DNA from: Mytilus trossulus
Lineage: Eukaryota
Direction: 5' to 3'
DNA: 64,000 bases
Assembly (NCBI RefSeq): GCF_036588685.1
Contig: NC_086376.1
Location: forward strand, 15,996,001 to 16,060,000
In this document: piece after piece, positions 7,334-47,849 of the stretch
How positions within the stretch are numbered: the stretch's first letter is position 1
Layout: each line of letters starts with the position of its first letter
Program-made: the position numbers and the translations under genes
The notes under the pieces: model-generated
The model's database searches: none
What the model saw: only the letters and a program-made list of their open reading frames with translations
What the model was told of the DNA's origin: nothing

Positions 7334-7703
7334 ACGAATTTTAGTTTTCATTTTTTTTTCTCAAGAGAAAATTAAAAGAAATTAACCAAATCTTGCCGAA
7401 AACTTTCATTTGAAGGAACTTAATGAGTGTTGTAATTTGGTCTAGATGAAACATAAATATGATCACAAGTAGTCACAATTGTCCAATTGGTCTATAATTT
7501 AATATTTCTAGAAGCATTTGAAACTAAAACGGCCATACATGATCCCGTGAAGATACTTACCACGATTGTCTGTTTAAAGCCGCTGTGCATTTAATATACC
7601 TATCAAAAGGAGGATGACTACCTTTGCACTGAAACCCTGACTTTTTGGATTATAGGTCTTCGTCTTTTAAATTAGCTTTGGATTTCAAATATTCTGGCAA
7701 CGA

Positions 7704-7747
7704 GCATCACTGAGGAGACATGTATTGTCGAAATGCGCATCTGGTGC
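7704..7747 (+). ncRNA. Minimal type I hammerhead ribozyme (intact core)
   Basis: gcatca CTGAGGA GACA-tgtat-TGTC GAAA T-GCGC-ATC^ tggtgc. Helix I gcatca/tggtgc, helix II GACA/TGTC, palindromic GCGC helix III, AUC cleavage triplet ending at 7741. Confidence 0.85.
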
Positions 7748-8051
7748 AGGACAATTGGTACCGTTAATGTTATTACTACCACTGGGTCGATGTCTCTGCC
7801 GGTGGACTATAAGTCCCCCGGATATCACCAACCCAGTAGCCAGTACCTCGGTATTGTATGAAATTAAAGATTGTTTGTGTTATTAAAATTTGCTGTTACA
7901 AAATGTTAGAAATAATTATAAATTCAGGAATGTATCTCCCTCATGCAAAGCTCTGATTTCTTTCACGGATTTGGATATACTTTTTGGATTTTTTGAATTA
8001 TAGCTCTTCATCTTTTAAAAAAGCTTTGGATTTTAAATATTTTGTCAACGA

Positions 8052-8095
8052 GCATCACTGAAAAGACATGTATTGTCGAAATGCGCATCTGGTGC
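8052..8095 (+). ncRNA. Hammerhead ribozyme copy with mutated core (CUGAAAA), probably inactive
   Basis: Identical to 7704-7747 except CTGAGGA>CTGAAAA, which loses the conserved G8. Confidence 0.7.
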
Positions 8096-8990
8096 AGGAA
8101 AATTGGTACCGTTAATGTTATCAAATAACTTTGTGCTTTTCTTTTCAAGACCAAATTATAAGAAATGAAAGCAAAACAAGCAAATATGTTCTTTAAAGGA
8201 TCTTTCCAAAAGCTTACAAGTCCTTAGGAAAAGTACAGTAAGTTGGCGCTGACATTTTCAAGAAATATAAGGACTCAATTGAAACAACATTTGAATGATA
8301 TGATTCATACGTTGTTCTGAAGATTCCGATGAAAATCCTCTTTTTGAATTTATGGCAATTAAACCAACAATCGATTGTAGTTAGTTGGTACAAGTGTCTT
8401 CAAAGACTTATTAGAAATACCCAAAACTGTTGTAAAAAGGTATATTTGAGATGCTGTAAAGATAAAAAAACCAACATGATTTACATCCATCCCTACAAAC
8501 ATATCAAAAACATAAATTGGCGACCCTATTATTGTCTTAGTAAACAAGTAAAGGTGAAATATCAAACGATAAACTGTAAGTTCTCTTACATAACGTTCAT
8601 TCTGTCCCATTGTACACTAATCTATAAATACGCTTACAACAGTTGTTTTAAAATCTTGTTTTACTGTATACGCTCATAATTGTGAATATCTGTAACTATG
8701 ACGGTAATCGCTCATTTATTTGATCTTATTATTCAGGTTAAGATCGCGAAAACTAATCTGGACCCAAGGTCATTGTTCCCCCTTTTCGGAAATTGTATAA
8801 AAGTATAGGTTTGAACGAGTCAATGTCGCTTTACTAGGTCTATTTGAATCATATCGTCTAATGAAACCCACTAGAATTGTCGACTAGAATAGAATTCATG
8901 ACAGAATTCTCTCTCTATTGATGTTGTGATGATTATCATATTTTGTTTAGTTACTTTCTATTTTCTATGAATTTTGCCCTTCACAAAATA

Positions 8991-9796: not shown

Positions 9797-11482
9797 AAGA
9801 GGGACGAAAGATACCAAAGGGACAGTCAAACTCATATATCGAAAATTTAGCCATGGCTTAAAATGAAAAAAAGAGAAACATACAAACAATAGTACACATG
9901 ACACCACATAGAAAACTAAAGAGTAAACAACACGAACTCCACCAAAAACTAGGGGTGATCTCAGGTGCTCGGGGAGGTAAGCAGATCCTGCTCTTTATTT
10001 GGCAACCGTCGTGTTGCTTATGTGATAACAAATCAGGTAAATAGTATAATTCGGTAGGTCACATTCGTGAAAGGGAAGAGGACTGTAGTTGCGACGTTAC
10101 CAACATATCCGATACAATTTGTGAAACGGTTATTCCATAACGATCAACCAACTGGCGTCCGTAAAATATACGAAGGGATGATTTCAACTTCACCATTTTG
10201 AACTCTTGGTTTAATAGCTTCCTTGTGAGCAGCAACCCATTATCAACAAAATTATGATAGAAAAAACAAGCACGGGATTATCGTATCAATTGGGAGATAC
10301 ATAATCCGTATGCAGGTGCTGCTGGAATGTTGCTACTTAGAAATGGAAAATTTACAATTGGAAAGCTGAAATCATCTCTTTTGTCGTAAAGTCTTGTTTT
10401 AAACCTACCCTCATTGTCAATTTCTAGATGTAAGTCAAGATATTAGCCGACTTAACTGTATTTGTAGTATCTTTTATCTCTAGTTCGATGGGATGGATGC
10501 GTTCCACGTAGTCACCAAATTTTGAATTGTTTAGTGAAAGAACGTCATCTATATAGCGGAAAGTAGAGTTAAAGGATATTGATAACTTCTTATCTTTCTT
10601 CCTAAGAAGTTCCTGCATGAAGTCAGCCTCATAATAATAAAGAAACAAGTCGGCAAGTAGAGGGGCACAGTTTGTTTCCATTGGGATGCCGACAGTCTGT
10701 TAAAAAACACGTTCTCCGAACGTAACAAATATGTTGTAAATAAAGAAATCAAGCATCTTGATAATATTGGTTTCAGAGAATTTTTTGTTTGAATCAGAGT
10801 GATTCTTTACAATGTAGGATTTATCCCTCCCTAAAACAAGATACTTGTATCTACGTTGGCCATTCTTTTTTATGAAGCAAAGTAATACCAACTCTTTCAA
10901 TTTGTCTTTTAGTTTGGAATGTGGAATACTTGTGTAAAGAGTAGAAAAGTCAAATGTTTTAACATTGTTACAAGATGAAAGAGAGTTGGATTGTATGTAC
11001 TCTAAAAGATCTTTGGAATTTTTAAGTATCCACATCTGAATCACGCCACCTCTAGAATAGGCAGTTTCACAATAAATTTGAAGCCCGTCTTTGATTTTTG
11101 ATAAAATAGATGTTAATAATTTAGAAAGAGGTTTCGTGGAGCACTTGGAAGACCCAGCAATATACCGTTGTTTGTAAGGACACTTATGTAATTTAGGTAT
11201 CCAATACAGTGATGGAAGATCCAGTTCTTCATCTTTGGTTGAGATACCTAAGAAACAAAGAACAGACCTATGCTTATCCAGGATTTCCTTTTTGGTAAGT
11301 GTCGTGAGGGTATATGTTGAGTTTCCAAGTGAATTGTCTATACCTAATTCGTTTATCAAGCAATTAATGTAATGACTTTTACAGACAAAAACGATGTTAT
11401 TTGGGGCTTTGTCTTCGGGGACAACAACATATTTATCATGGAGGTCGGATAGGTGTTTAGCAACATTTGGGTCTTTAAAGAT
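9797..11482 (-). mobile_element. 5'-truncated, disrupted Penelope-like (Naiad-type) retroelement, family B (RT plus 3' UTR)
   Basis: Minus-strand ORFs 10700-11545 and 10424-10681 give PLE RT motifs (LYWIPKLHK, TFDFSTLYT, GIPM.TNCAP, FRYIDD) with a stop at 10700 and a later frameshift. The 3' UTR ends ...ctttcgtccctcttt. Confidence 0.92.
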
Positions 11483-16610: not shown

Positions 16611-16876
16611 TATTGTATATAATTTTCTTAACTTAACGTTTTGAAATTTCAGGCGCTGAAATAGTGCTCATTGGAATCAGCATAATACATGTTATCACTG
16701 CAGCAACATTTTATGTGTGTGTTATCTTTAATTATTATTGTTTGTATAAGACAACCACATTAGTTATCCAACATCTTATTTTACACGTCACTATAAGGCC
16801 CTCACAAACGCATTTGCCATTATGCCTTTTAAAAGCTCTTAAGTAGTTATCAAGAGTACTAGGATTATCATTTAAT

Positions 16877-16920
16877 ACACTATACGCGCATTTCGTCTAT
16901 ATAAGACTCATCAGTGACGC
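16877..16920 (-). ncRNA. Minimal type I hammerhead ribozyme
   Basis: Reverse complement gcgtca CTGATGA GTCT-tatat-AGAC GAAA TGCGC GTA^ tagtgt. Core intact, helix I weakened. Confidence 0.75.
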
Positions 16921-17239
16921 TCAGATCAAAATAGTTATAAAGGCCAAACAAGTACAAAGTTGAAGAGCATTGATGACCTAAAATGTCGACAAGTCGTACC
17001 AAATACGGCTAAGGTAATCTATTCCTGGGAAAAGAAAATTCTTTGTTTGTTCGAAAAATGCAATGTTTTGTTAACAGGAAATTTATAAAAATGACTATAT
17101 AATTGATATTCATGTCAACACCGAAGTGCTGACTACTGGACGAGTGATACTTTCGGGGACAAAACGTCCACAAGCAGTGGCATCGACCCAGTGGTGTAAA
17201 TAGCTATAAAAATCAAAAGCACCAGGATTAGGATTTAAT

Positions 17240-17283
17240 ACGCTAGACGCGCGTTTCATCTACATAAGACCCATCAGTTCCCC
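17240..17283 (-). ncRNA. Degenerate hammerhead ribozyme copy
   Basis: Reverse complement CTGATGG GTCT-tatgt-AGAT GAAAC GCGC GTC^ tagcgt. A9>G and helix I disrupted. Confidence 0.6.
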
Positions 17284-17595
17284 TGAGATCAAAATAGTTA
17301 TAAAAGCTAAACAAGTATAAAGTTTAAGAGCATTAACAACCTCAAATTCCAAAAAGTTGTGCCAAATACAGCTAAGGTAATCTTTTCCTGGTATAAGAAA
17401 ATCCTTAGTTTTTCGAACAATTCAAAGTTTTGTAAACAGGAAATATATGAAAATGACAATTAAATTGATTTGCATGTCAACACCGCAGTGCTGACGACTG
17501 GGTTAGTGATACAATCAGGGACGAAACGTCCAACAGCAGTGGCATCGACCCAGAGGTGTAAATAGTTATCTAAAATAACACGATTATAATTTAAT

Positions 17596-17639
17596 ACGCC
17601 AGACGCGCGTTTCGTCTACATAGAAATCATCAGTGACGC
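17596..17639 (-). ncRNA. Minimal type I hammerhead ribozyme
   Basis: Reverse complement gcgtca CTGATGA tttc-tatgt-agac GAAAC GCGC GTC^ tggcgt. Core and helix I intact, helix II mutated. Confidence 0.75.
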
Positions 17640-18429
17640 TCAGATCAAAATAGTTGCAAAAGTACAAAGTACCAAACACCTTGACTAAAATTAATTTGCC
17701 CCTTTTAATTTTCATAAAATATTGAACATTGAGAAGCTTATTCAATACAACGTGCTAAATGAGTTATTTCCCTGCAGTGTTAAGTACCACCTTTACCGTC
17801 ACAAGGCTACATTTGGGTAGATGGGATGTCTAAATTATGATTCATAGAATTTTTTAATAATTTGCCGAAATGAAGTTTTTTATCATACTTTTTAAAATAA
17901 ATTATTAAAAGAATGGGTGACGCGGCTTTTTTTCATTCTACAGGTTGTTCAAAATTTACAGATTTTGTAAATTATGCATTGAAAACCCAATTTTCGGCAA
18001 GAAAACGAAAACTGCACTATATGATTTTGAGATAAAATAGGAGAAGATAGCTTTAATAGTATTTTGTTTAATTTCAGATAAGAAAAAGAAAAAAATGAGG
18101 TCATCGCACCCATTTTCTTGCTACATGATAAAATAGTGAAATTCCTAACACATTCTATCGTAAAAGTACCTTTATCTGAACTATCTGCCTCCCCTTATGT
18201 GGCAAAATTTCAAAATTTGAATCAAACAAAAGTCTTCTGGTTTTTGTTTTTAAATCCAACCATAAGTATGATTAAACATGTCATTTGCTATTTTGAAATG
18301 AAAATTCTTACACATGCATTTCCTACTACTTTCAACATTTGCACATTCTATCAAAAAAATAGACCGATGCTTTCTGGTATATCAAAATCCAAGATGGAGG
18401 AAGACCATTAAACTGTCACAAGAAAAGTG

Positions 18430-20050
18430 AATTGACAACGTTCCTGACTTTCTGGTGAATCCACTTTCAAGTACCTTTATAAAATTTAGCTCTCTTTTAT
18501 ATAAGGGTCATGGTCAATTTTGACCATTATACCTTTCATTGTAACATATAATATTATCTATTTACTTGTTGAACAAAACATTTTTTTAATGGTCAACTGT
18601 TCAGGCCATTTATCAAATGAAAAAAATATGATTTTATTTTACTACGTAGGCGTGGATTCGCTGTGGCCATCTGTGATATCATAAGCAGTCGTCCTGTATT
18701 CATTTCTCATAACATTTGATAGTAAATACTTTTGTGGACGAAACGTGCGTCTGGCAGAAATAAAATAAATTCTTGTAACGAAGTTAGTTAATTAAAAACT
18801 TAGGGTTGATGCTTCTACGGGTGGAGGTATCTCACTCAATGATTTCATCAGCCCAGTAATCAGCATTCTGTTTAACATGAATTATCATTTATATGGTCGT
18901 AATTATGAATTAACTTAACACTTACTTTTTCTAGATGCTTTATTATTTTAAATTTATGACAATGCACATTTTTTTCAAAGACAACACGGGAATTTAATTT
19001 TAATACATCTGTAGATTCAGCTATGCCCAAAAAACAAATTGAATACGTTATCTCTAAGTAGAGAAAGTTACGAAGTGTAAAATAAGTCTCTTCGTTTAAG
19101 AAATAATTCATGCCAAAAAATATTGCAAAGGGAAGCAGAATTCATCTTAATTTATTTGCTTAAAAACCACTCGATGAAGTTTCACAAATTTGCTGTAGAC
19201 AATGTAATGAACTGTTCCATGGCAGTTCTAATTTCTAATATCTATAAAGTAATATGTATAATCAACTCAAATGAGAGAATTAATCTCATTCTCTAATGGC
19301 ATAAAGTTTGCATGTAGACAAATAATTTGAATGTCTAGCATACAAAATTACATAATCAGGAAATTGTGATCGCATGGTACATACAAAGTAAAACGCTCTA
19401 ACTCGATGAACTGTTCTTAAATTATTCCTTTCGTGTCAAATGATTTACTTAGACTCTGACCATTACCATATTTGCATGCTCTTACATCCATTAATTGTAA
19501 ATATGTTCTACCAATTATGCACACTTTTGAAAAGGATATCAAGGGGACAATTAGGCAAAACCAGACAATACTGTGACCGAAAAAGAAAATGACTAAAATA
19601 CAAACAACTGTCTTTTAAGGTTCTACTTAGAAACCTACGACTTGGCAACAATCGCTATAGACCTTTTATGAAACTAGGATACACCATATTGATACAGTTA
19701 TGACATCACATTGTTCATAACTGCCTTTTATATGTTAGTAGTCATTAGTTAGACTGATTTTTCAAATCTATACAGAGCGAATTCTGGTTTACAAATGCAG
19801 TCTTCAATAACATTCTGGGTATATTTGTATTGATCCCCTCAGATCTGGTAAATCTCTTAAAGTCTTGAATCCATTATTGGATAATTGTAGTAACCAAGTT
19901 AACAAAAATTGCATATCCAGATGTAATCAACCATATGTTTGTAGTGTTTGACTCGCACACCCTTTTGGGTTCGTCTTCGGTTCTCTTAGAGTAATTGTTT
20001 GAATGTGTGAACTTAGATAATCACTTAATCATTATAAAAGTATTAATAAC
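18430..20050 (+). repeat. Segmental duplication block A (copies ~27490-29220, partial ~37050-37680 and ~31720-31840)
   Basis: Colinear shared strings, e.g. catggtacatacaaa, aaatgatttac.tagactctgaccattaccatat, gcatgctcttacatca, tttgactcgcacac. Confidence 0.8.
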
Positions 20051-21727
20051 TATAAAAAAAAACCCACATCAAAACAGCTGTCATATGTGGTAAATCTTTT
20101 TAGTCTAGAATCCTCTGTAATACAAACATGATTTGTAGGCGTTCGTTTCTATGTAAGTTGGCGTTTGTTTTTGTTGCACTTTAGTATCCCTGTCATTCCG
20201 TTTTTTCCTCTTAAAATGGATGTTATTCCCTCGATTTCGGTTTGTAAACCGGATTTGTTTTCTCTCAATTGATTTATGACTTTGAATACCGGTATACTAC
20301 TGTTGCCTTTATTTTGGAAAATCATTGCATAAATGTAATTAGCAATTGAACTGGAACTGGCATATTGAGAGGTAATTAATAAAGTTTCTGTAATTGACCT
20401 TCACTCTCATTTTCAGTTCTGTGGGATTTGGGTTCGGTTTTCAATGGAAAATGGTTGCAGTAATAATTAAAAAAAAGTTGACCGAGCCTTATTTCTTGAC
20501 TTTTATCTAGAAATTTCGCAATAAGGGTCGATTGAAAACAAAAGATTCCGACAAAATATGTGGTTTCGACTCGACATATTAAGAACTATTCTTTTTTATG
20601 TAGCAACATTCAAGCAGCACCAAGTGGTTTTTTCCTGAATTATTACAAATATTGTGACAAGTAAGAACATTGTTTTTTTTTATTGTCTACAGTTTCATCA
20701 ATACTTAATAGATTTAACTGATATAATTATTTCACAACGGAGTATTAGTATTCAGAATTGAGATGTACCTGTGCTTTTCATTTTATATCTATGAAAGAGT
20801 GAAAATGCATACACTTTTTTCAATTCTGTGCAAAATTGAGATAAAAAATTAAGGTTGCACATTCTGCGCTACATATTATAGTGTGGACAAAGTGCACTTC
20901 TGGCGTATTAAAATTTCAAACTTGTTGCCTTTTGTTGGCTGTTGTTCGTGTGATTCTTTGTCAATTGTGTTCTCCTATTATTTATATTGTAGTCCTGTGG
21001 TGTTGTGTTGTGATTTTGATGTTATGTTTCACATGGCCATAAAAGTGCGAGGTTTAGCATGCCACAAAACCAGCTTCAACCCACCATTTTTTCTTTAAAA
21101 AAAAATGCCCTGTACCAAGAATACGGCCATTGTTAAATTATAGTTCGTTTCTGTGTGTTTTACATTTTAACGTTGTGTCGTTTGTTTTCTCTTATTTTTT
21201 GTTTTTTGTCCATGGATTTATGAGTTTTGAACAGCGGTATACTACTGTTGCCTTTATTTAGCCATTTACTGGCTGTTATGTATGGCCTTTGAGGGTTTGA
21301 TATTTTTAATTTATCTTTTTATGTAACGTATACAAATGTCTGACGTCAGACACTCAAATAATCAATGTGTTCGTAGATAGGAGATGTTTATGTGTTCTGT
21401 TAAATTGTTCCTTTTAAAATTGTTATACGATGATGACTAATGTACTCACATTTTGACTATTTATTTATTTATTTATTTATTTATAGTGTCTGTATATTTA
21501 ACGCATTAATGTAAATATAACGGAATTTAATGAGACTGTCATGAAAGTGAGAGGGTTAGCGCTATAGAACCAGGTTTAATCATCCATTTTCTACATTTGA
21601 AAATGCCTGTACCAAGTCAGGAATATGACAGTTCTTGTCCATTCGTTTTTGATATGTTTTGTTATTTGATTTTGCCATGTGATTATGGACTTTCCGAATT
21701 GATTTTCCTCTAAGTTCAGTATTTTTT

Positions 21728-22790
21728 GAACTAGTTTGAATCTCGGTCTATTTCTGTAATTTATTCTTACATACTTTTGATTTTTTTAACTCTGTATGCG
21801 TACATTGCCTATGAAAAACAATTTTAAAATTGTTTGTATGCACATTGAACAACAAATTTATGTGACGTATATAATTTTTCTAACGTCAGACACTCAAATC
21901 AATCCATGTGTTCTTAGACAGTAGATGTTATTGTGTCCTGTTAAATTGTTCCCTTTAAAAAGTTTTGAATTCTCATATATTCTATGTATAATTTTTGGAC
22001 TAGTTTGAATCTCGGTCTATTTCTGTAATTTATTCTTACATACTTTTGATTTTTTAACCCTGTATGCGTACATTGCCTATGTACATTTTAAAATTGTTTG
22101 TATGCACATTGAACGACAAATTTATGTGACGTATATAACTTTTCTGACGTCGGACACTCAAGTAGATCCATGTGTTCGTGGATAGGTTTTTGTGTCCTGT
22201 TAAATTGTTCCTTTTAAAAGTTTTGGATTCTCATAAATTCTATGTATAACTTTTGGACTAGTTTGATTTCTGTAATTTATTCTTACATACCTTTGATTTT
22301 TTAACCCTGTCTGCGCTCATTGCCTATGTATAATTTAAAATTGTTTATAATCCAGGTACTTTTGATAACTATTGTATGCACATTGAACGACAAATTTATG
22401 TGACGTATATAATTTTTCTGACGTCAGACACTCAAATCAATCCATGTGTTCGTAGATAGTAGATGTTGTTGTGTCCTGTTAAATTGTTATACGATGATGA
22501 CTGATGTTCCCATATTTTGACTATTTTATTGATTGTGACTGTTTATTTAACGCATCATGTAAATGTAACGGAATTTGATGAGACTGTTATTAAAGTGAGA
22601 GGGTTAGCGCTATAGAACCAGGTTTAATCCACCATTTTCTACATTTGAAAATGCCTGTACCAAGTCAGGAATATGACAGTTCTTGTCCATTCGTTTTTGA
22701 TGCGTTTTGTTTTTTGATTTTGCCATGTGATTATGGACTTTCCAAATTGATTTTCCTCTGAGTTCAGTATTTTTGTGATTTTACTTTTTA
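21728..22790 (+). repeat. 5' pseudo-LTR (three ~260-270 bp internal units plus 3' terminal segment)
   Basis: Units begin gaactagtttga/ggactagtttga at ~21728, ~21997 and ~22255. The terminal segment is essentially identical to 26588-27120. Confidence 0.9.
22583..22680 (+). ncRNA. Candidate twister-like (P5-permuted) structured RNA in the pseudo-LTR; copies at ~21535-21632, ~26913-27010 and ~58157-58255(-)
   Basis: TAA-TCC-AC-[CATTTTC/GAAAATG]-CCTG-TACCAAGT-CAGG enclosed by ACTGTTAT/ATGACAGT. Resembles the twister UAA..GC..GCCGGUCCCAAGCCCGG core. The P1/P2 region is non-canonical. Confidence 0.45.
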
Positions 22791-22876
22791 CTACAACCAA
22801 GTCGATGTCAAGTTTCTTCCTAGAAGAAACTTTACTGCTGGTGGATTATTCCCCGAGGGCATCATTAACTTGGTAG
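22789..22876 (+). promoter_or_regulatory. Conserved structured 5' leader shared with retrozyme monomers
   Basis: accaagt/acttggt, gatgtc/ggcatc and gga/tcc nested stems plus an extra aagtttcttc/gaagaaactt hairpin. Homologous to 7774-7840 and to the reverse complements of 17134-17198 and 17497-17560. Confidence 0.65.
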
Positions 22877-22884
22877 CTTTATGC

Positions 22885-25800
22885 ATGATGATTACAAAAT
22901 ATACGAAGAACAAACCGGCTGGGACGTCGCCCGGGTTACCAAGGTCCTCTTTTGCTGCACGGAACACTGTAGCATTTGATTTGTGTGTTACACGGAATAT
23001 CCTCCGGGATACCCCTGATTTGACTTATGTTCAGCCAGAAGGTAATTATTATTTCAAAAATTCAGATACCTTTCATAAATTAAAGCCATGCTGCGTCAAT
23101 GTTTTCGACTGTTTAAATACACCTGCTACAAGTGAATCAACACCTATCATTTCTTCTTGTAAACATAAAAAAGGAAAAAGGAGTACGTGTAAGACTTGTG
23201 ATATGTTAATCACGACTCCTGATTTTACTAGTAATTTAACATCTAAAACATATTATACTAAATCTTTTGAGCCTCTGGACTGTTCCACGGACAATGTCGT
23301 GTACGGAATCGAATGTACTTTGTGTGGACTTCTTTATGTTGGTGAAACTCGTCAAACTTTGCGTAAAAGAATGAATCAACACCGGTCTGATAATAAAGAT
23401 CCTCAATTTAGGGTTCTTTATAACCATTTTAATCAACCGGACCATGATCCTTCTTTTTCTATGAAAGTACGCATCATTGAGAAAATTTATCACCACACAA
23501 ATAGCCCTGTACTAAGTACTCCCTTCCGCAAAGATAGAGAAAATTATTGGATAAGGGAGTTAGGGACTGCAATGCCATATGGTTGCAATGACAATATTAA
23601 AGGAGTAGGAAATTTGTCAAGTCCTGCCTGCAGTGATGTTAATGTAATGGGTTTATTTAATACTACCTTACGACAACAACGTAGTCATGGGCAAAAACAT
23701 TACCATCGGCCTAATGTAAAAAAGTCTTCCAAATCTAGATCACCATCTGGGAGCTTTGATGACCTTCTTTCACATCTTCATCATCCACTAAGGTTACATT
23801 ACATAAGAACTATTCTATTTTCACTGCCAGTTAATTTTCTTAAACGTTTGAGAGATTATGCACTTGACAAAGGAGGCACCAATACATTTTCTGCAATATA
23901 CAGACTAGTCAGTATTATTTGTGATGTAGCTCTTTTCCGTCTTTTCAAACCAGTAAGATCTGAACCTTTACATGAAGAAAAGAGGAGATTCCTTCCTGTT
24001 GATTTTGCCAATAGAGGAATCGATGCAATCAATATCTGCAACGTTCTACATCACAAGGAGGTAACATCTAAAATTCCTATTTATTTTCAAAATCAGTCTG
24101 TTCCTATTGTATCCTACAGTTACACCAAAACCATTGCACCTTAAATATTTAACTTTAAACAGGCATTGCAGGACCTTGACTTAGAACAATACCTTAAAAA
24201 CCCTCAGACATGTGACTGTTCCCACTCGCCTTATAATTACAGCCCCTCTGGTCATGTTATAACTGGGGATCTAAATATAATTCAACATGAAAATCTCCGA
24301 AAGGTGATTTCTCATGGTCCTAAGTTTAGAGAACCCCAACACATCAATTGGAACCATAACTTCAAAATAATTATGGATTCTATTGAGGACTACGCCAGAG
24401 CATGGGCTAAGCGAGAAGAAGTTGAACTGGACACTTTGTCAGAATGGGTTAAAACTATCAGGTCTCTGATAAAACGTCGCATTCACAAGTTGAAAAACTG
24501 TGTGAACGATCGACCAAAGTCCGTTTTCAGAGACAAAGAGGTCATGAAATGTCTATCAACTCTTCATGATAAGTATGTTGTTGTTCCTGCGGACAAAGCT
24601 TCAAATAATATTGTCTTTGTATGTAAATCGTATTACTACGAATGTCTTGTAAAAGAATTGGATATAACGGAGCACTCAGGTAATCCCACATACAAAGACA
24701 TATCATTTGACAAGGATGAGATTTTAGCAAATCATAAGTCCTTCATGGCATCAATAAACATTACATTGAACACCAAATCGGAGGACTTACCTTGTTTGTA
24801 TTGGATACCAAAGCTTCATAAAATTCCGTACAAACAACGGTATATTGCTGGCTTATCTTCGTGTTCCACTAAAGAATTGTCTATTAGATTGACTAAAATT
24901 CTGTCCGCAGTGAAAGAGGGTCTTCAGAAATACTGTGAAACTGTTTACTCGCGTAGTGGTATTAACCATATGTGGATTCTTAAAAATTCTAAAGAACTTC
25001 TAGACAATTTCAAATCTCGGTCTCTTTCTGAAATAAGTTCCATCAAAACTTTTGATTTTTCAACCCTGTATACCACCATTCCCCATGTAAAATTGAAAAA
25101 TCGCCTAAAAGAAATTATCCACAATGCCTTTCAACATAAAAATGGTAGCATACGCTATAAATTTATTACTTTGGGATTTCATAAAGCATATTTCGTTAAT
25201 AGTGACAAACAAAAAGGTAAATCATGCTACACAGAAGAACAAGTAGTCAGTATGCTGGAGTTTCTTATCGACAACATATTTGTTGAGTTTGGAGGTAGAC
25301 TTTTCCAACAAGTTGTCGGCATTCCTATGGGAACAAACTGTGCGCCTCTTCTTGCCGACCTCTTCTTATTTTCATATGAATCGGAGTTCCTCCAGACACT
25401 TGTCAAAAACAAGAGGATCAAAGAAGCCAGATTATTTAATTTCACTTTCAGATATATTGATGATGTTCTTTCCTTAAACAATCCGAACTTTTCTGATTGG
25501 GTTCCATTAATATATCCCCCAGAACTCGAGATTAAAGAAACAACAGACACGGCTTCCTCCGCCTCATTTTTAGACTTATATCTCGAATTTGACTTACACA
25601 GTCATCTCAGTACCAGAATCTATGACAAACGAGACGATTTTAATTTCGAAATTATAAATTTCCCCCACCTTAGTAGCAATATACCAACTTCACCTGCATA
25701 TGGGATATATATTTCCCAACTTATTCGATATTCAAGAGCTTGCAGCTCCTACTCAGACTTTGTAAAACGTCATCAGTGTCTGAGTAGAAAGTTGATGAAC

Positions 25801-25923
25801 CAGGGGTATGTCAAAGAACGTCTCGTCCTTTTTCTAAAAAAGTTCATCGGAAGGTACCAAGACCTTGTTGATAAATATTCCGTATCAACTTCTCAAATAA
25901 TACACGATGGTCTTGATGTATAG
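22885..25923 (+). CDS. Naiad-type PLE polyprotein (Zn-finger/GIY-YIG endonuclease plus reverse transcriptase), interrupted by one in-frame TAA at 24142-24144
   Basis: ORFs 22870-24144 and 24166-25923 are in the same frame (offset 1296 nt). Motifs: CKTC, NVVYGIECTLCGLLYVGET..LRKRMNQH, RE.YWI..L, CDC..GHVITGDL, DFSTLYT, GIPMGTNCAP, RYIDD. First ATG at 22885. Confidence 0.93.
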
Positions 25924-26324: not shown

Positions 26325-27140
26325 AACTAGTTTGAATCTCGGTCTATTTCTGTAATTTATTCTTACATACTTTTGATTTTTTTAACTCTGTATGCGTACA
26401 TTGCCTATGAAAAACAATTTTAAAATTGTTTGTATGCACATTGAACAACAAATTTATGTGACGTATATAACTTTTCTGACGTCGGACACTCAAGTAGATC
26501 CATGTGTTCGTGGATAGGTTTTTGTGTCCTGTTAAATTGTTCCTTTTAAAAGTTTTGGATTCTCATAAATTCTATGTATAACTTTTGGACTAGTTTGATT
26601 TCTGTAATTTATTCTTACATACTTTTGATTTTTTAACCCTGTCTGCGCTCATTGCCTATGTATAATTTAAAATTGTTTATAATCCAGGTACTTTTGATAA
26701 CTATTGTATGCACATTGAACGACAAATTTATGTGACGTATATCATTTTTCTGACGTCAGACACTCAAATCAATTCATGTGTTCGTAGATAGTAGATGTTG
26801 TTGTGTCCTGTTAAATTGTTATACGATGATGACTGATGTTCCCATATTTTGACTATTTTATTGATTGTGACTGTTTATTTAACGCATCATGTAAATGTAA
26901 CGGAATTTGATGAGACTGTTATTAAAGTGAGAGGGTTAGCGCTATAGAACCAGGTTTAATCCACCATTTTCTACATTTGAAAATGCCTGTACCAAGTCAG
27001 GAATATGACAGTTCTTGTCCATTCGTTTTTGATGCGTTTTGTTTTTTGATTTTGCCATGTGATTATGGACTTTCCAAATTGATTTTCCTCTGAGTTCAGT
27101 ATTTTTGTGATTTTACTTTTTTTTTGTGATTTTACTTTTT
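26325..27140 (+). repeat. 3' pseudo-LTR (two internal units plus terminal segment)
   Basis: Direct repeat of 21728-22790 lacking one internal unit. Ends ...ttttgtgattttactttt, with the last ~20 nt duplicated. Confidence 0.9.
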
Positions 27141-29409
27141 ATCTTTTGTTGCTTAACTCTAAGTTTTGAGATTTCAAACACAGAAATCATGCTCAGTTTT
27201 AAATCAGTATAAAACATGGTAAAATATAAAAAAAGAAGTATGATTGCCAATGAGACAACTATCCACAAAAGACCAAAATGACACAGACATTAACAACTAT
27301 AGGTCACCGTACGGCCTTCAACAATTAACAAAGCTTAAATTAGTATTGTTGATATGAGACAGACACATAGTTTTACAACATTAAATTTACACCTCACTTT
27401 AGTTTAAGGTCGAGATTTGTAATTATGCTGTATAGATAGCTCTTAATAGACCAAAGTCTTTACTAAAAATAAATCAATACCAACAAACTGTCAATAGAAA
27501 AGTGAACGCGTGGAAAACGAGTGATAATGTTCCTGTCTTTTTGGTGGATATATATTCACGTCCCTTAATAAGATCATTCATTCTTTTACATATAAAGATG
27601 GTCAATGTCAAAATATTTTGACCATCAAACCGGTTAAAAAGAAGTGCTTTAAAAAAACAATTTTCCTTGTTTTATGATCAATTGTGTAGTCCTATAATAA
27701 TGTAAAGGAATGATTTTGATATAACGTAGGAATGGCTTGATATGGACATAATGTTGACCTTTGATAGCAAATACTTGTGTGGTTGAAACGCGCATCTGTC
27801 CTTATAAAAAACCTGCTATCGATGACGATTTTATTCAAAATCACTGGGTCGATGACACTGCTGGTGGGGGTTTGTCCCCGAGAGTATCACCAGCATAGTA
27901 ATCATAGATATAGTCGTAATTATGAATTAAACTAAATCTTACTTTAATAAGATGCTTTATCTTTTTCATATAATGACGATGTTCAACTTTTTCAAGGAAA
28001 ACGTGGGTCTGTTTTATATATTTATATCTATTAGTTCAGCCATGCCCCTAAACTTTTCCTGTTTAATAAGCTATTTGTACGCAGAGTAAATCGAAATAAT
28101 TAAAAAATTAATACGAATATTCCCATCTCAATTTTCTCGCTTAATAAACAACTAAACTAAATTTCACAAAATAGACTTGGACAATGTTATCAACTTGTCC
28201 ATGACAATATATATTTCTAATAATCTGTATTAATTAACTAAGATGAGAAAATTTATCTAATATTCATATGACCTAAATGTTTCATATAGACAAATAATTT
28301 GAATGTTTTTTTCAATTAATTTACTAGGAAGTTGTGATAGCATGGTACAAACAAAATCAATGCTCTAACTCAATTAACTGTACTTAAATTATTCCTTTCT
28401 TGTTAAATGATTTACATAGATTCTAACCATTACCATATATAGCATGCTCTTACATCATTTACTGTTTATATTTTCTACCAGCTATTCACACTATTTCAAT
28501 ATGTTGCTAAAGATGTCAAGGGGACAATTAAACAATAAGTGGGAAAAAACAGACAATACCATGATAATCAAAATGACTTTAAGAAAAACAAGTGTCTTGT
28601 AAGGTTTGACTTAGAAACTAACGACTGGGCAACACGAAACTCGCTATAAACTACTCATGAAACAATGACAAACCATATTAATACAGATATAAAATCATTT
28701 TGTGAATAACTCCTTTCTATGATAGTAATACGTAAAATATCAAAGTTACCGAAGTCCGATGTTGTTTTTAAACGACAAGGCGTTAAGCAAATTGCAAAAT
28801 TAAAAAAGAAGAAGCTAAAAACATCAAACGAATGGATAACGGCTGCCATAATCCTGATTTGGTACAGACTTGGTACATACTTTGTAGGCACAGATCTTAG
28901 TAAGACAGATTTTTGAAACCTATATAGAAAAAATTCTGGTTTATAGAATGATGCAGTCTTGAAAAACATTCTTGGTATTTTGTATTGTTCGCTTCAGTAC
29001 TGGTAAATCTTTGAAGTCTCGAATCCTTTGTGAAAATTCTTAAATAATTGTAATAATCAATTTAACTAAAGCTGCATATGAAGATGTTATTAACCATATG
29101 TTTTTGTAGTATTTGACTCGCACACTCATTTTAAAGGGTTTTTTTGGATTCGTCCTCGGTTCTCTTTAGGTAATTGTTTGAATACGTGTAATTAGATAAT
29201 CACTTGATTTATATTAAAATTTCAATAGATTTAAAAAGATGTGGTATGGGTACTAATTAGACAACTCTCCATACAAGCAACGTTTTATTAAAGTGAACGT
29301 CTGCCGGATATCTTGACTTACATCTATAAATTGACATTGTGGCTCAACTGAAAAGAACACTTTGTAATGAAATGTATGATTTAAGCCTCCCTTTTGTGAA
29401 ATTTTCATT

Positions 29410-37400: not shown

Positions 37401-38339
37401 ACTGTGAATATTTTCTACCAGTTATGGACTAGTTTTCAATATATTGCAAAAGATACTAAGAAGACAATTAAATCAAAATCCAAAAAAAACTAAACCGGAC
37501 AATTCCGTGACACAAAAGTAATGACTAAAAGACAAAACGAGTGTCTTGCAAATTTCTACTTAGAATCTAACAAAAGGGAATTTCAAAACCTGCTATAAAC
37601 CAATCATGAATCTAGAACACATCATATTAAAACCGATATAAAATCATTATATGCATTACTGTTTATTTTCTATGATAGACGGGTATACAAAAATATTAAA
37701 TCTATTCTACCTCAGCAATAACTTTTTTTTGGAATTTTTTTATTAAACTTTTGGTCCTCAATGTTCTGCAAGGAATTGATTGGCCTTTTAAACTTTTTTT
37801 TTATTCAAGTCAATACAATTTTTCAATTCTGGTATCTATGCTCAGTTTATTCACAACCACTGAGTCGATGCAACTGGCGGAGTATTTAACCCCAAAGGGT
37901 CTCACCGCCTCTTTAATCAGCACTTCTGTGTTGACATGATCATCACTGATATGGTCATGAATAAAAAATCAACTGTCTACAAAGTCTTACATTTTTTGAA
38001 ATAATTAGACTTTTCTACCTCTGCAATAGATTACCGTAGCTGTTTTAGCAATACTTTTAGGAACATTTTGCCTATGCTGACATGAAATATCAATAATATG
38101 TTAATTTCTAAAAAAAATATGATTGATAAAATGTTAAGAAATTCATAACGTTTAAGGGTTTTTTCATAAGCTATAAAAGAAATATACAAAATTTCCAAAG
38201 ATCTTTTGGAGTACAAAAAATTATTTTGTAATAGTAGTAAAATACAATTATCTTGTCTTAGGAAGGGATGAATCCTACTTTGTAAAGGAAAATCAATCTG
38301 ATTCAAACAATTTTTCATTGATACTATTCTGGGACTGAT

Positions 38340-44196: not shown

Positions 44197-45079
44197 AATA
44201 ACGAATCATTTGAATCACACATGTTTAAATTTCATTACCATTACATTTGATTACATTTAGATTTTTGTTTGGGATTAAACTTAGATATATATTTCAAGTT
44301 ATTTACAAATACTTATTTGACCACTGGTAAAATAAAAACTAAGTTCTTTATTCATACTAAATGAAAAAAGACAAATTAATTAGATACGACAACCAGCTCA
44401 TTTGAAAGACAGACATATTTAGGATATGATGGAGTAATACGTTCCATCCCCTTCTCTATGAGAGGGATAAATTGGCACATGTGGGAAAGGGCTTCAATTA
44501 ACAATCAGAACCCAGAAACATAAAAAAGAAACAAAAACATGTAGAAAACGTATTATAAGCTTATTCAAGTCAAAATCATCTATAAAATAAATGCGAAAAT
44601 CCTAAAAAAAAACCAAAGTGTTACGATAAACGTATTTATAATATGTAGGAAAATAAAACTATAACAATACATATTCAGTCAATTTTTACTTTATTCAAAG
44701 CAAAATAAATATATAAATACCGATATAGTCTGTATATACTCAATTATGTTATTTCTGTGTTCATAATTGTTATTATATCTATAAATGATAAAAGTATTAA
44801 CTTTGGTCATATATTGCGATTTTAATATGAAATATTTGGATTTGGAGAAGACTAATGCGTCGTCTTTAAATATTTTTATTCTACCAGTTATAAAGAAAAA
44901 TATTGGAAATATAATTTTGTCTGTCGAAAAGGTTCAACATTAAGATTAGTTTCCGAAAAAAAATCAAGGTATGAAAATACATTGTTTATAAAAATTAAAA
45001 TACATTAATTCCTGTTCTGATAAAGTTGTCAATCAGTACAACTGTTTAAAATGGTTTCGGAATGTGAAAAATTATCTGA

Positions 45080-45123
45080 GCGTCACTGATGAGTTTTGTG
45101 CAGACGAAACTCGCGTCTGGAGT
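45080..45123 (+). ncRNA. Hammerhead ribozyme in a solo family-2 retrozyme fragment (~45065-45159)
   Basis: gcgtca CTGATGA GTTT-tgtgc-AGAC GAAAC TCGC GTC^ tggagt, followed by attaaattataagcctgatacctatgataactatt. Confidence 0.75.
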
Positions 45124-47849
45124 ATTAAATTATAAGCCTGATACCTATGATAACTATTTTTACTTCTGGTCTTCTAGATGGCAAATACGCCCACTTCTAC
45201 AACAGTTGTTTGATGTTCTACAATATCGCCAAATTGGATTAGCAATCCAATCAGACACAATTGGTTAACGCACGTATATCTGGGTTCCAGTAGTAAAACT
45301 GTGGGAATATACTACACAAACACACAAACAACCGAATTAAACATCCAAACACACTTACAACTAATCCAATCAAAATCGCCAACAAAGAAGTTTTTATAAT
45401 TGATAACACAGTCACTTAAGTATAGCATAACAACGGAGCCCCTTAACTCTCATGTGAATATCAATAACGTCGTTTGTTAGAGATTAAATCTGGTGCGAAC
45501 CAGTTTAAAAATTGGCGCGGACGATTTTCAAATTTTAAAAAAGGAGCGCAGTACAATTAAATTGGTGACTTGAATTTGTAACTTGTTTGCGCCAATTTTT
45601 TTCTTCTTCATTACAACACTTTATTGTGATGAACTACGATGCAAAATAATACAAGAGAAACATCTTAATTTCACAACAGGACATTTTCCGTGATGCCTGT
45701 ATGTATATTACTTGCTAATTTTAGCTGTGAAGGGAAATATTTGTAATGAATTTTCTGACATAATAAACAATGTCGAAGACATGAAACAGGAAATGACAAT
45801 CTGGCAAAGAAATTGGAAAATTCGTCTATTGCTGACGACAAATGGTGCTTTTTTAATTGTTCCTGCGACTGTTTGTAAGAGTGTGATAAAGACATTTTCT
45901 GAACCAAAACTTGAGTGCACAGTGTACTATCTATAGGGATTTTTCTTAAAAAACATTTTAAATAAAAAAAAATATATCTTCGATCGTTAAACGCCAAAAA
46001 TGAATAAAAGCAAGGAATCAGAACGGTCATACGTATAAAACATAAAGAGGTATACATCTGAAATGGTCAGTTATGTTGAAGAATTAATTGTTCATGTGTT
46101 TGGAAAAAAATAATTATGTTCATTTATATTATATAAAAGTTGTTATTATAATACTGAAAACCGAAATAAATCGTTCTTTTTTCATAAATAGTTTAAATAA
46201 CTTATATAAAAATACAGCACTTTGTTTTCATGCTATCGTACAGAGACATATCAAATTCATTCTAGATTATTTGTTTCTTTGATGGTCGTAGGAAGAAATT
46301 TATTCATTCAAAGGGTACAGCTAATTGTTATTTACCTCCTTGTTTTACCAGTTTAACCTTAATTATAACACTGACACATGTGATATTAAAGAGTTTCATT
46401 CACATTAATTTTATCTACTAATTTATTACTTTAGTTGAATTTATCATTCATCATTTGTATGAGAATAGTTTTCGTAAAAATATTACATTACCCTTGTTAT
46501 TGTAATTGAGAATTTACTAAATCTATTTTCAAAATCGGTAAAATTTGGTTACAATGATCATTCAATGTATTACTTATAACTGATGGCAATATCATTATTG
46601 TTGGTTAATATGGATCCAAGTACCTGGCTTGAATCAAACTTGGAAGTAGAAATATTATTGTAAATTAGTACAATCTTGAAAAAATTTCCAGAATCCTTCG
46701 TAAGGGAAAATATTTTTGTGAACTAAAATCATGCAAGTTTTGCATTGTGATACTGACCATTTCAATAAGTTCTTTATGTTTATCTGAATTTTTGTATCAT
46801 AAAGATGTGAGATTTGTCGTCCGCAAATCTGTATGTTGTCAGGTATATCCAACGTTTTTCTCTTTAACCATCGTCCAGAATGTGCATGTACTGTTTGGCA
46901 TTTGACGTTAAGCAACCAACAATCAATCCAAAGTGAAATACAACATGTATGAATGCAATTTATATTTTGAAAAATTGACTTGCCAATGAGATATTAACAT
47001 TTTGTTATTGTTTAATTTTTTTTAATTGTTCAATTGTACAATTCACATAGGATTTTCGACCCCTGGAATATATTACCTAAGCTATATTTTGCCAAACAAT
47101 TATAATGATTTGGACCTTTATGTTATTCAAACTCTTTGCCTTGCCTTTTAACGTTTGAATTCTACAGTTAGATTGATTCGTTTGAAGACGAAGCGAAACG
47201 CACACCTAGGGAACAAAAAGCCATCTTTTATTTTTAAGTTTGTTTAGTAATATAGAATATAAAACATTTATCTTCATAAAATGATAACATCCCTTTACTA
47301 ACAATGCAATTCGTATAACAATGACGAAGTCAATTTGTAAATCCTGTACTTTAACTTGTCTTCTTAAATATTCGATAATTTGATTTAAAACTACAAATTT
47401 GATGGAACTGCACCAAGAGAACATAATGGAAAAATGTAGAAAAGTTAGTTTTATTTTTCAGTTTCACTGTCATCTTTTGAAATGATGTCCTTTAAACCTT
47501 TAATGAGAATATTGAACGCATCGACCCCGTCGAATTTGACATAACAAGATATGAAACATACAGTAAATATAAAAAAAAACGTGGTATGATTGACAATATG
47601 AACACTTTTCCCAAGAATCAAAATAAAGTCTGTCTAATATTTCTGCTTACATCTAGGTTTTAGCTATTGGGGATCGAATGAATATTTAAACTACACGACC
47701 TTTTTTTTTCAAGACTTGAAATACATCTATTGAAAATTACCTGAATATAAATACCTTGTATAACCCAGGTAAGTATACACAAGGGGACCTGTGTTAACAA
47801 TGATCCATCGTCCAGGTATAAACGGTGGACTATATTATAAAAAAATCTA

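Follow-up and report, generated by a model that had tools for sequence, protein, structure and literature searches.

A predicted stem-loop RNA domain of about 70 nt, supported by compensatory base changes, opens both a self-copying retrotransposon of the Naiad type and the very abundant hammerhead-ribozyme-carrying repeats (retrozymes) of the mussel Mytilus trossulus, and new insertions of both kinds of element end just 5' of it. This makes the Naiad enzyme the best candidate yet for what copies the retrozymes, although recruitment of the reverse transcriptase (RT) by the motif is inferred from position and analogy only. The motif was first noticed in a 64,000-nt stretch of contig NC_086376.1 (hereafter the window), and the observation behind the original prediction is confirmed and stronger than could be seen from the window alone. 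All sequences cited in it lie where they were said to lie. A covariance model built from the window copies (model R1) gives these copies E-values of 1e-19 to 4e-25 and finds seven copies in the window (E<=2e-18), while the best unrelated hit in the 64 kb has an E-value of 0.77. Three of the seven are decayed copies that had been missed, each located downstream of a hammerhead remnant. In the 1.3-Gb mussel genome the model finds more than 130,000 candidates. The features of the window are collected in Table 1.

Table 1. Naiad, retrozyme and stem-loop features in the window (window coordinates)
Feature	Position	Strand	Details
Naiad leader	22789-22880	+
AC-rich unpaired lead (TACTACA)	22789-22795	+	First 7 nt of the Naiad unit, directly after the pLTR end
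Stem-loop domain of the Naiad A leader	22796-22874	+	P1 22796-22802/22868-22874; bulged C 22803; P2 22804-22809/22858-22863; invariant core 22833-22857, including P3 GGA/UCC at 22843-22845/22850-22852; R1 65.7 bits, E 1e-19; MFE z-score -3.5
Lineage-specific perfect 10-bp hairpin	22810-22832	+	Inserted between the P2 5' strand and the core; present in all Naiad A copies read, absent from Naiads B and C and from retrozymes
Naiad ORF	22885-25923	+	In-frame ATG at 22885; N-terminal GIY-YIG, CxC linker, DKA-type RT; this copy broken by TAA at 24142-24144
End of the upstream pseudo-LTR (pLTR)	22557-22788	+	5'-truncated tandem copy, identical in register to the element's own 3' end; repeat spacing 4332
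3' terminal region of the full Naiad unit	26889-27140	+	Insertion ends at 27140, last ~20 nt duplicated
Retrozyme insertion, TACTACC family	7639-8121	+	135-nt partial unit plus one 348-nt unit; motif 7774-7843; hammerhead about 7702-7748, cut after 7741, 32 nt before the unit boundary
Retrozyme insertion, TTACACC family	16844-17662	-	One partial and two full units; motifs 17561-17491 and 17199-17129; hammerhead 17639-17596, cut after 17602, 40 nt before the boundary
Decayed retrozyme copy of the motif	27836-27905	+	Hammerhead remnant upstream; 72.8 bits
Decayed retrozyme copy of the motif	18793-18863	+	Hammerhead remnant at about 18735-18755; 64.9 bits
Decayed retrozyme copy of the motif	37852-37920	+	62.3 bits
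Solo 5'-truncated retrozyme (hammerhead plus 3' end)	45074-45157	+	Stops at the unit boundary, but ambiguous (see text)

From 5' to 3' the domain comprises a 7-nt AC-rich lead (TAYYACM in all families, unpaired in the folds), helix P1 (7 bp), one bulged base, helix P2 (6 bp), an internal loop (CUGCUGGUGGA...UCCCCGAGG) that never varies, and a short apical hairpin, P3. In two alignments (A2 and A3), 93% and 92% of cells are paired, respectively, against 26-51% in slid controls, and double-sided changes occur in 7 of 13 pairs (A2) and 10 of 23 pairs (A3), values that none of 500 shuffles reached. However, both alignments were fitted to the structure of the model and the sequences are related, hence the shuffle counts are not probabilities. 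P1 occurs as ACUGGGU/GCCCAGU, ACCAAGU/ACUUGGU and ACCGGAC/GUCCGGU, and P2 as GAUGCC/GGUAUC, GAUACC/GGUAUC, GAUGUC/GACAUC, GGAAUC/GAUUCU and GGUGAC/GUUACC. The three compensatory changes claimed for the outer stem (ACCAAGU/ACUUGGU against ACUGGGU/ACCCAGU) are real, but the claim that the inner stems also covary holds only for P2 and the two apical pairs of P3, given that the inner loop and the base of P3 are invariant. Single-sequence MFE folds of five lineages give the same dot-bracket, and the domain stays a local unit in circular folds of whole retrozyme units. The antisense strand folds about as well, and the sense orientation is inferred from the direction of the ORF and the hammerhead and from the conserved G-U pairs. 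An alternative helix (CUGGUG/CACCAG) is possible in retrozymes and Naiad C but absent in Naiads A and B, so it is not a conserved pair, and a helix across the boundary between the 3'-terminal GGUAYC and the P2 5' strand shows no covariation. A likeness to the 7SL Alu domain (GGUGG, UAGUCCC) disappears in the family with GGACG/CGUCC.

The motif itself matched no Rfam family, including hammerhead, twister, hatchet, pistol and HDV-like ribozymes, either at gathering scores or at E<=10. It could nevertheless be argued that it is a new self-cleaving or processing RNA that cuts at its own 5' edge, in the way HDV-like ribozymes act in the 5' UTRs of R2, RTE and L1Tc elements, thereby creating the unit ends and replacing the hammerhead that Naiads lack. 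The invariance of the internal loop over lineages whose helices have changed, and the coincidence of unit ends with the 5' edge of the motif, would fit such a role. Yet we consider this very unlikely, as the fold is a plain nested hairpin without the double pseudoknot of HDV-like ribozymes (by inspection, the lead pairs only weakly, and not consistently, with the GGUGG segment), the abundant circRNA consensus is continuous across the boundary, and the published run-off transcription of a clone that includes the motif is described, in its figure legend, only in terms of hammerhead products.

The autonomous element of the window has the hallmarks of the Naiad clade of Penelope-like elements (PLEs) as defined in PMC8557442. 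Pfam GIY-YIG is matched at aa 138-230 of the N-terminal piece (E 5e-8), whereas RVT_1 matches the C-terminal piece only weakly (E 0.008, below cutoff). The CxC linker (QTCDCS) and the change of DKG to DKA (PADKAS) are read in the translation. The unit period is 4332 nt, within the 3.4-4.4 kb expected for the body, with upstream partial copies, and no hammerhead hit was obtained in the element at E<=10. The motif belongs to this family itself: that other copies might lack it had been set beforehand as a condition for rejection, but at least 40 copies (Naiad A) carry the pLTR end, motif and ORF start together. It recurs in two further Naiad lineages of this genome (Naiads B and C, 7 of 9 loci) and in contigs from other mussel-type sources, where a Naiad ORF starts about 10 nt after it (contigs L246 and L120 at 70% protein identity, L096 at 48%). 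It fills the 5' leader of at least three Naiad lineages (48-70% protein identity), ending about 10 nt before the ATG. Most hits of pattern scans in bacterial and metagenome collections were chance matches in GC-rich DNA, and only those confirmed by R1 were used. A search for Naiad proteins also gave hits in other molluscs, such as Pinctada imbricata.

The retrozymes are those described from Mytilus galloprovincialis (PMC7229834), i.e., non-LTR elements with a type I hammerhead inside short tandem repeats (170-400 bp) without LTR, PBS or PPT. The units are 348-369 nt long, the Hammerhead_1 hit scores 21 bits (below gathering) with an intact CUGAUGA...GAAA core, and the sequence matches the published mussel consensus, for which Northern blots and circRNA clones exist. 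The motif starts every retrozyme unit in at least three families, is contained in the published circRNA consensus, and is the best-conserved part of the retrozymes (89% identity between families, against about 71% for the rest of the unit). Their homology runs on to the Naiad start-codon context, GCAUGAA.

We next asked where insertions end relative to the motif. In the window, the boundary 22788|22789 equals the Naiad 3' end at 27140, the array end at 8121 matches the internal junction 7773|7774, and that at 16844 matches the internal junctions, as the original prediction had it. The solo copy ending near 45157 is, however, ambiguous, as its next ~15 nt loosely resemble the start of the motif, and boundaries in general are uncertain by 0-4 nt because flanks often begin with T, TA, TAC or TTA. 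All 17 intact retrozyme insertions in the loci examined end at the unit end. Whole-genome counts of exact words (a DNA search with the Naiad 3' end returned nothing, its words being too common) gave 15,044 3' ends against 66 junctions for Naiad A, 7,895 against 137 for Naiad B, and 28,953 against 11,051 for one retrozyme family. Leaders and motif starts are almost always preceded by a 3' end (62 vs 66 and 11,166 vs 11,051), and templates therefore span the junction. Insertion ends lie 32-46 nt past the hammerhead cut. At most 66 of the 15,044 Naiad A ends and 137 of the 7,895 Naiad B ends continue 9-12 nt into the motif, mostly true tandem junctions, which gives no sign of a second start site or of a 30-40-nt tail. 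The 5' ends of insertions cluster upstream of the hammerhead, which leans towards linear multimeric transcripts as templates, although circular ones remain possible.

An alternative view is that the motif is the 5'-terminal element of a unit-length linear RNA whose transcription starts at +1, serving RNA stability, export, translation start or promoter function, with tandem junctions arising when the RT jumps from the 5' end of one RNA to the 3' end of another. Its position just past the 3' boundary would then be trivial. The motif does begin 7 nt from the unit start and end about 10 nt before the Naiad ATG, retrozymes keep the GCAUGAA context, and a few single units start at or within 10 nt of +1 (loci L007, minus strand, L027 and L030). 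Still, this appears unlikely, given that retrozymes encode nothing yet keep the motif better than any other part, with compensatory changes that argue for an RNA structure rather than a DNA promoter, and that leaders are almost never found without an upstream 3' end. Moreover, the RNA species known for these retrozymes are hammerhead-processed circles and linears whose ends are not at the boundary, and the cloned circRNA consensus reads straight across it. A Pol III reading of the B-box-like GGGTCGATGCC is also disfavored, as the likeness is lost in Naiads and the units contain T5 runs.

Taken together, Naiad-type PLEs carry the domain as their 5' leader and the mussel retrozymes share it by common descent. 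We postulate, with moderate confidence, the following mode of action. Units would be transcribed as multimeric RNA from tandem or pLTR-plus-body copies (circular RNA is also possible), the Naiad RT/EN protein would recognize the stem-loop, and target-primed reverse transcription would start on the U-rich residues immediately 5' of it. Every new copy would therefore end just before the motif and be variably 5'-truncated, and retrozymes, by keeping the same handle, would be copied in trans by Naiad protein. The structure, its conservation, its sharing between the two element types and the position of insertion ends are what our data establish, while protein binding, the choice of start site and trans-mobilization are inferences. 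The original interpretation, i.e., that the stem-loop recruits the RT and positions the template on a tandem or circular RNA, tying an autonomous Naiad to non-autonomous ribozyme RNAs, is thus only partly supported: the tie holds, as do its premises that PLEs are the suspected mobilizers of retrozymes (PMC7229834) and that PLE reverse transcription can start internally (PMC11167929). The last ~25 nt of the units also share a loose pattern (GGUAYC...UUUGAU...UAU), which could be the true recognition signal and is the part actually copied.

It is also conceivable that the motif is shared only by ancestry, that retrozymes are mobilized by another enzyme, such as canonical hammerhead-bearing PLEs of the Poseidon/Neptune type, and that in retrozymes it serves circRNA biology (ligation, stability, masking of the ribozyme, localization). 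Retrozymes and canonical PLEs share type I hammerheads, which Naiads lack (PMC8557442), and in Xenopus retrozymes are sisters of the pLTRs of Neptune/Poseidon elements (preprint 10.64898/2026.07.22.740005). We regard this as unlikely, since a function tied to circles does not explain strong conservation with covariation in hammerhead-less Naiads, retrozyme and Naiad insertions end at the same place relative to the motif, and retrozyme 3' ends sit nested in Naiad 3' regions. No canonical PLE carrying the motif was seen, albeit without a targeted search, and such elements of this genome could be the real partner.

A more far-reaching and tentative possibility is that the stem-loop is the specific RNA handle of N-terminal-EN (Naiad) PLE reverse transcriptases and alone tells the enzyme which RNA to copy and where to start. 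Hammerhead-less Naiads would then be the drivers of the hammerhead retrozyme circRNAs that reach up to 1% of mussel RNA. In this view, minimal units made of little more than the motif can already amplify, as in a 74-nt array in a Bathymodiolus-derived contig and a 131-nt array of Naiad junction plus leader in this genome.

Which enzyme mobilizes metazoan retrozymes has been open since 2020, and how PLE reverse transcriptases choose their template is known from a single in vitro study of one Poseidon element. A compact, covarying RNA element shared by an autonomous Naiad and its likely passengers makes the first question testable, provides a sharply defined object for binding and target-primed RT assays, and accounts for why retrozyme insertion ends are permuted relative to the ribozyme cut. 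It would revise the assumed partner by linking the most abundant PLE clade of bivalves to one of the most abundant small circular RNAs known in animals, and it suggests that the hammerhead and the mobilization signal are separable modules. As a covariance model, the motif can also be used to annotate Naiad 5' ends and retrozymes in mollusc genomes. We found no paper describing this motif or a Naiad-retrozyme link. As far as term searches of the main text and one supplement show, the description of the M. galloprovincialis retrozymes (350-390-bp tandem units; PMC7229834) does not single out the motif, does not note that insertion ends are offset from the hammerhead cut, and names no autonomous partner beyond 'PLEs or LINEs'. 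The Naiad clade (PMC8557442) shares with our element the N-terminal GIY-YIG, CxC, DKA, pLTRs, heavy 5' truncation, lack of a canonical hammerhead and very high copy number in bivalves, but in the passages found by term search neither a conserved leader RNA structure nor a specific link to retrozymes is described.

The closest precedent is the internal RT-initiation region of the Poseidon element PAc (Frangieh et al. 2024, PMC11167929), shown in vitro, where reverse transcription starts on unprocessed tandem RNA in or next to an AC-rich stem-loop beside the protein-binding region, just downstream of the pLTR end. There, genomic insertion ends coincide with the start sites and, as in the mussel elements, lie downstream of the hammerhead cut, cleavage by which is not needed. 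The lead plus the 5' strand of P1 is likewise AC-rich and opens a covarying stem-loop. However, PAc belongs to a different PLE clade (C-terminal EN), its site lies 111-118 nt inside the ORF rather than in a leader, its binding region also lies inside the ORF, there is no sequence likeness, its RNA element has not been defined by covariation, and it has two start sites with a 30-40-nt tail, which were not seen here. HDV-like ribozymes in the 5' UTRs of non-LTR retrotransposons are comparable as structured RNAs of about 70 nt at the exact 5' edge of the element, but differ in their double pseudoknot. SINE/LINE partnerships with shared recognition tails, and the binding of R2 protein to its own 5' and 3' UTR RNAs, offer a further parallel, in that a non-autonomous RNA carries the same structured handle as its autonomous partner. 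In the mussel elements the shared piece would lie 3' of the initiation site, and is therefore absent from most (5'-truncated) copies and regenerated only in copies longer than one unit.

The spacer between the pseudo-LTR end and the Naiad ATG reads as the original prediction gave it, i.e., from 5' to 3' the lead TACTACA, helix P1 (ACCAAGT paired with ACTTGGT), a bulged C, helix P2 (GATGTC paired with GGCATC), a perfect 10-bp hairpin, and a core holding CTGCTGGTGGA, a short hairpin and TCCCCGAGG. The same layout is carried by the two retrozyme families. A simple word scan, followed by a search with a covariance model (R1, built from an alignment, A1), recovered three more decayed copies, each following a hammerhead remnant. 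The seven copies of the window score E 1e-25 to 2e-18, while the next best hit has E 0.77, so that chance is excluded. The observation is confirmed and extended. Coordinates of all features are collected below.

Coordinates of the shared motif, the elements that carry it and neighboring features (window positions unless a contig or locus is named; L068, L069, L002 and L029 are loci, L196 is a contig of a Bathymodiolus septemdierum symbiont bin and G000:C12 a contig of this genome)
Feature	Position	Strand
End of the pseudo-LTR preceding the Naiad leader	22788	
Extra 10-bp hairpin of the leader	22810-22832	
Naiad ATG	22885	
TAA stop in the Naiad ORF	24142-24144	
Motif, first retrozyme family	7774-7843	
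Motifs, second retrozyme family	17561-17491 and 17199-17129	-
Decayed motif copies (start)	27836, 18793 and 37852	
UUCG-capped second hairpin	about 7838-7860	+
UUCG-capped second hairpin	about 17128-17105	-
Sub-threshold twister match in the Naiad pLTR	22620-22683, repeated in the 3' copy near 26952-27015	+
Tandem duplication of the last ~20 nt of the Naiad	27101-27140	
26-nt retrozyme 3' end within the Naiad A 3' region	22347-22372 and 26679-26704	
Retrozyme piece within the Naiad C 3' region	L068/L069 about 427-915	
3' end of a Naiad C-type element	21200-21259	
5'-truncated Naiad RT fragments	about 10400-10560	-
5'-truncated Naiad RT fragments	about 38555	+
Array of a 74-nt unit	L196:4551-6307	
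Array of a 131-nt period	G000:C12:27544239-27545050	
Retrozyme insertions beginning within about 5 nt of the hammerhead cut	L002 about 1457; L029 about 2998	

The ORF shows an N-terminal GIY-YIG domain, a CxC linker (QTCDCS) and a DKA-type RT, the diagnostics of the Naiad clade (PMC8557442). Although this copy is broken by a stop codon, other genomic copies have uninterrupted frames. The unit period is 4332 nt, with two partial upstream copies, and further 5'-truncated RT fragments (the YIDDVLSLNN region) are scattered in the window. The stack of Naiad A partial copies (Naiad A being the lineage of this element) is directly abutted by the 3' end of a Naiad C-type element, with the same sequence as found upstream of the motif in L069, i.e., a nested or adjacent insertion of two Naiad lineages. 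At the 3' end of this insertion the last ~20 nt (…tttgtgattttacttttt) are present twice in tandem but only once at the internal junction, which could be a footprint of re-initiation or slippage. No hammerhead is detectable in the element at E<=10. However, a sub-threshold match to the type-P1 twister ribozyme model (20.1 bits against a gathering score of 67.2; E 0.05-0.37) lies inside the pLTR, about 105 nt upstream of the unit boundary; it keeps UAA and GCC.GU.CCAAG.C.GG but lacks the 3' GAGGG segment. If real, Naiads would carry a different ribozyme where retrozymes carry a hammerhead.

The 348-369-nt repeats are the non-LTR retrozymes of Mytilus. The published M. galloprovincialis genomic clone and circRNA consensus contain the same motif and begin at the same hammerhead cut, 46 nt upstream of it (PMC7229834). 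In the 1.3-Gb genome R1 finds 134,584 first-look candidates, and all 150 that were scored have E below 1e-20.

The motif belongs to Naiads and not to one copy. The block of pLTR end, motif and ORF start recurs in at least 40 copies at 92-100% identity, and all copies read carry the extra hairpin. A second lineage (Naiad B, about 57% protein identity, frames of about 1000 aa) and a third (Naiad C) both carry the motif directly upstream of the ORF, in 7 of 9 retrieved loci, without the extra hairpin. A pattern scan of public collections gave mostly chance hits, yet R1 confirmed true copies in a Bathymodiolus septemdierum symbiont bin, a SUP05 bin, a set of JYMV01 contigs and several marine metagenomes. 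In the contigs L246 and L120 (70% identity to Naiad A) and in L096 (48%) the Naiad ORF starts about 10 nt after the motif, and in L122 and L100 the motif is followed by an ATG. The Bathymodiolus-type retrozymes have a different hammerhead region but the same motif, 32 nt after the cut. Satellites made of the motif almost alone were also seen, i.e., 23.5 copies of a 74-nt unit in L196 and, in this genome, a 131-nt-period array of Naiad A pLTR end plus leader.

P1 occurs in three mutually complementary versions (ACUGGGU/GCCCAGU, ACCAAGU/ACUUGGU and ACCGGAC/GUCCGGU) and P2 in at least five (GAUGCC/GGUAUC, GAUACC/GGUAUC, GAUGUC/GACAUC, GGAAUC/GAUUCU and GGUGAC/GUUACC). Pairing was counted on two alignments, A2 and A3, both fitted to the model.

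Pair counts on the model-fitted alignments
Alignment	Distinct rows	Cells paired	Pairs with double-sided changes
A2	34	93.2%	7 of 13
A3	38	91.7%	10 of 23

In both alignments, no shuffle out of 500 reached the observed values, and controls with the partner slid by 1-3 columns gave 26-51% paired, although, given that the alignments were fitted to the model and the rows are related, the shuffle counts are not probabilities. In A3, double-sided changes occur in 4 of 7 pairs of P1 and 4 of 6 of P2, whereas the inner loop and the GGA/UCC base of the apical hairpin P3 never vary and only the two apical P3 pairs covary (U-A against G-C). Independent support comes from single-sequence MFE predictions for Naiad B, Naiad C, L100, a Bathymodiolus-type retrozyme and a Mytilus retrozyme, which return the identical dot-bracket, and the domain persists as a local unit in circular folds of four whole retrozyme units. 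Conserved G-U pairs (the P1 closing pair and the fourth pair of P2) fit the sense RNA, while folding energy alone does not tell the strands apart.

Between the two main retrozyme families the first ~91 nt are 89% identical, a stretch that covers the motif, a directly following hairpin capped by UUCG, and CATGAA, whereas the rest of the unit, including the hammerhead, is about 71% identical. This second hairpin, seen in all retrozyme families, itself covaries between them (CAGCAC/GUGUUG against CAGUAC/GUACUG), and the CATGAA (CAUGAA in the RNA) corresponds to the start-codon context of Naiads B and C. The 5' part of the retrozyme therefore looks like a Naiad leader plus its first codons.

In the loci examined, 17 of 17 intact retrozyme insertions end at the last base of the unit, give or take 0-4 nt that could be target-derived T, TA, TAC or TTA. 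Exact words (up to 1 mismatch) were also counted over the whole genome, where the reversed control pattern gave 0.

Whole-genome counts of words at and across the unit boundary
Element	3'-terminal word	Word spanning the boundary	First word of leader or motif
Naiad A	15,044	66	62
Naiad B	7,895	137	
Retrozyme TTACACC family	28,953	11,051	11,166

From these counts, 98-99.6% of Naiad 3' ends do not continue into the motif, and neither do about 18,000 retrozyme 3' ends, while nearly every motif is preceded by a unit 3' end. The cut of the hammerhead lies upstream of the boundary by 32 nt (TACTACC family and Bathymodiolus type), 40-43 nt (TTACACC family) or 46 nt (published family). We therefore infer that new copies were not primed at the 3' end of a hammerhead-cleaved monomer, and that the template must have run across the boundary, as a multimer or a circle, with cDNA synthesis beginning at a fixed internal site just 5' of the stem-loop. 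The 5' ends of insertions are not uniform: in the loci L001-L032 and the window, 11 of 19 lie at unit positions 214-294, just upstream of or inside the hammerhead, and two others lie within about 5 nt of the hammerhead cut. This hints at linear multimeric transcripts with defined 5' ends rather than rolling circles, albeit in a small sample that was chosen for containing motifs.

The original prediction saw in this stem-loop an RT-recruiting and template-positioning element tying an autonomous Naiad to non-autonomous ribozyme RNAs, an interpretation that our data support in part. The tie between Naiads and retrozymes and the position of the insertion ends follow directly from the sequences, whereas protein binding, initiation at this site and the use of the handle in trans are inferred. 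The best reading, in our view, is that the stem-loop would be the recognition and positioning handle of the Naiad RT and that retrozymes would use it in trans, a role that is well motivated but remains a hypothesis. The copied 3'-terminal ~25 nt also share a loose pattern and may contribute to recognition. Circumstantial support for a shared machinery comes from nested pieces: a 26-nt retrozyme 3' end (96% identical), stopping exactly at its canonical last base, sits in each ~270-nt repeat of the Naiad A 3' region, and a ~220-nt retrozyme piece with a hammerhead remnant and 3' end sits in the Naiad C 3' region.

The autonomous partner of metazoan retrozymes was left open by Cervera & de la Pena (2020), Craig et al. 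(2021) noted that Naiads lack hammerheads, and a 2026 preprint links Xenopus retrozymes to the pLTRs of Neptune/Poseidon elements. In the literature searched, we found nothing that links mussel retrozymes to Naiads or describes this motif. For the Poseidon element PAc, Frangieh et al. (PMC11167929) showed that the protein needs RNA from the first 172 nt after the pLTR-ORF junction, that reverse transcription starts internally in an AC-rich stem-loop, that genomic insertion ends coincide with those starts, and that hammerhead cleavage is dispensable, unprocessed tandem RNA being the substrate. The element studied here is the positional counterpart in a different PLE clade, as it has an AC-rich lead that opens a stem-loop, directly after the pLTR end, with insertion ends at its 5' edge. 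We thus place it, as a putative case, with the PLE internal-initiation RNA element known from PAc, from which it differs in lying in a leader rather than in the ORF, in having one sharp inferred start zone and no 30-40-nt tail, in being defined by covariation, and in being shared with retrozymes, a new and testable link between Naiads and retrozymes.
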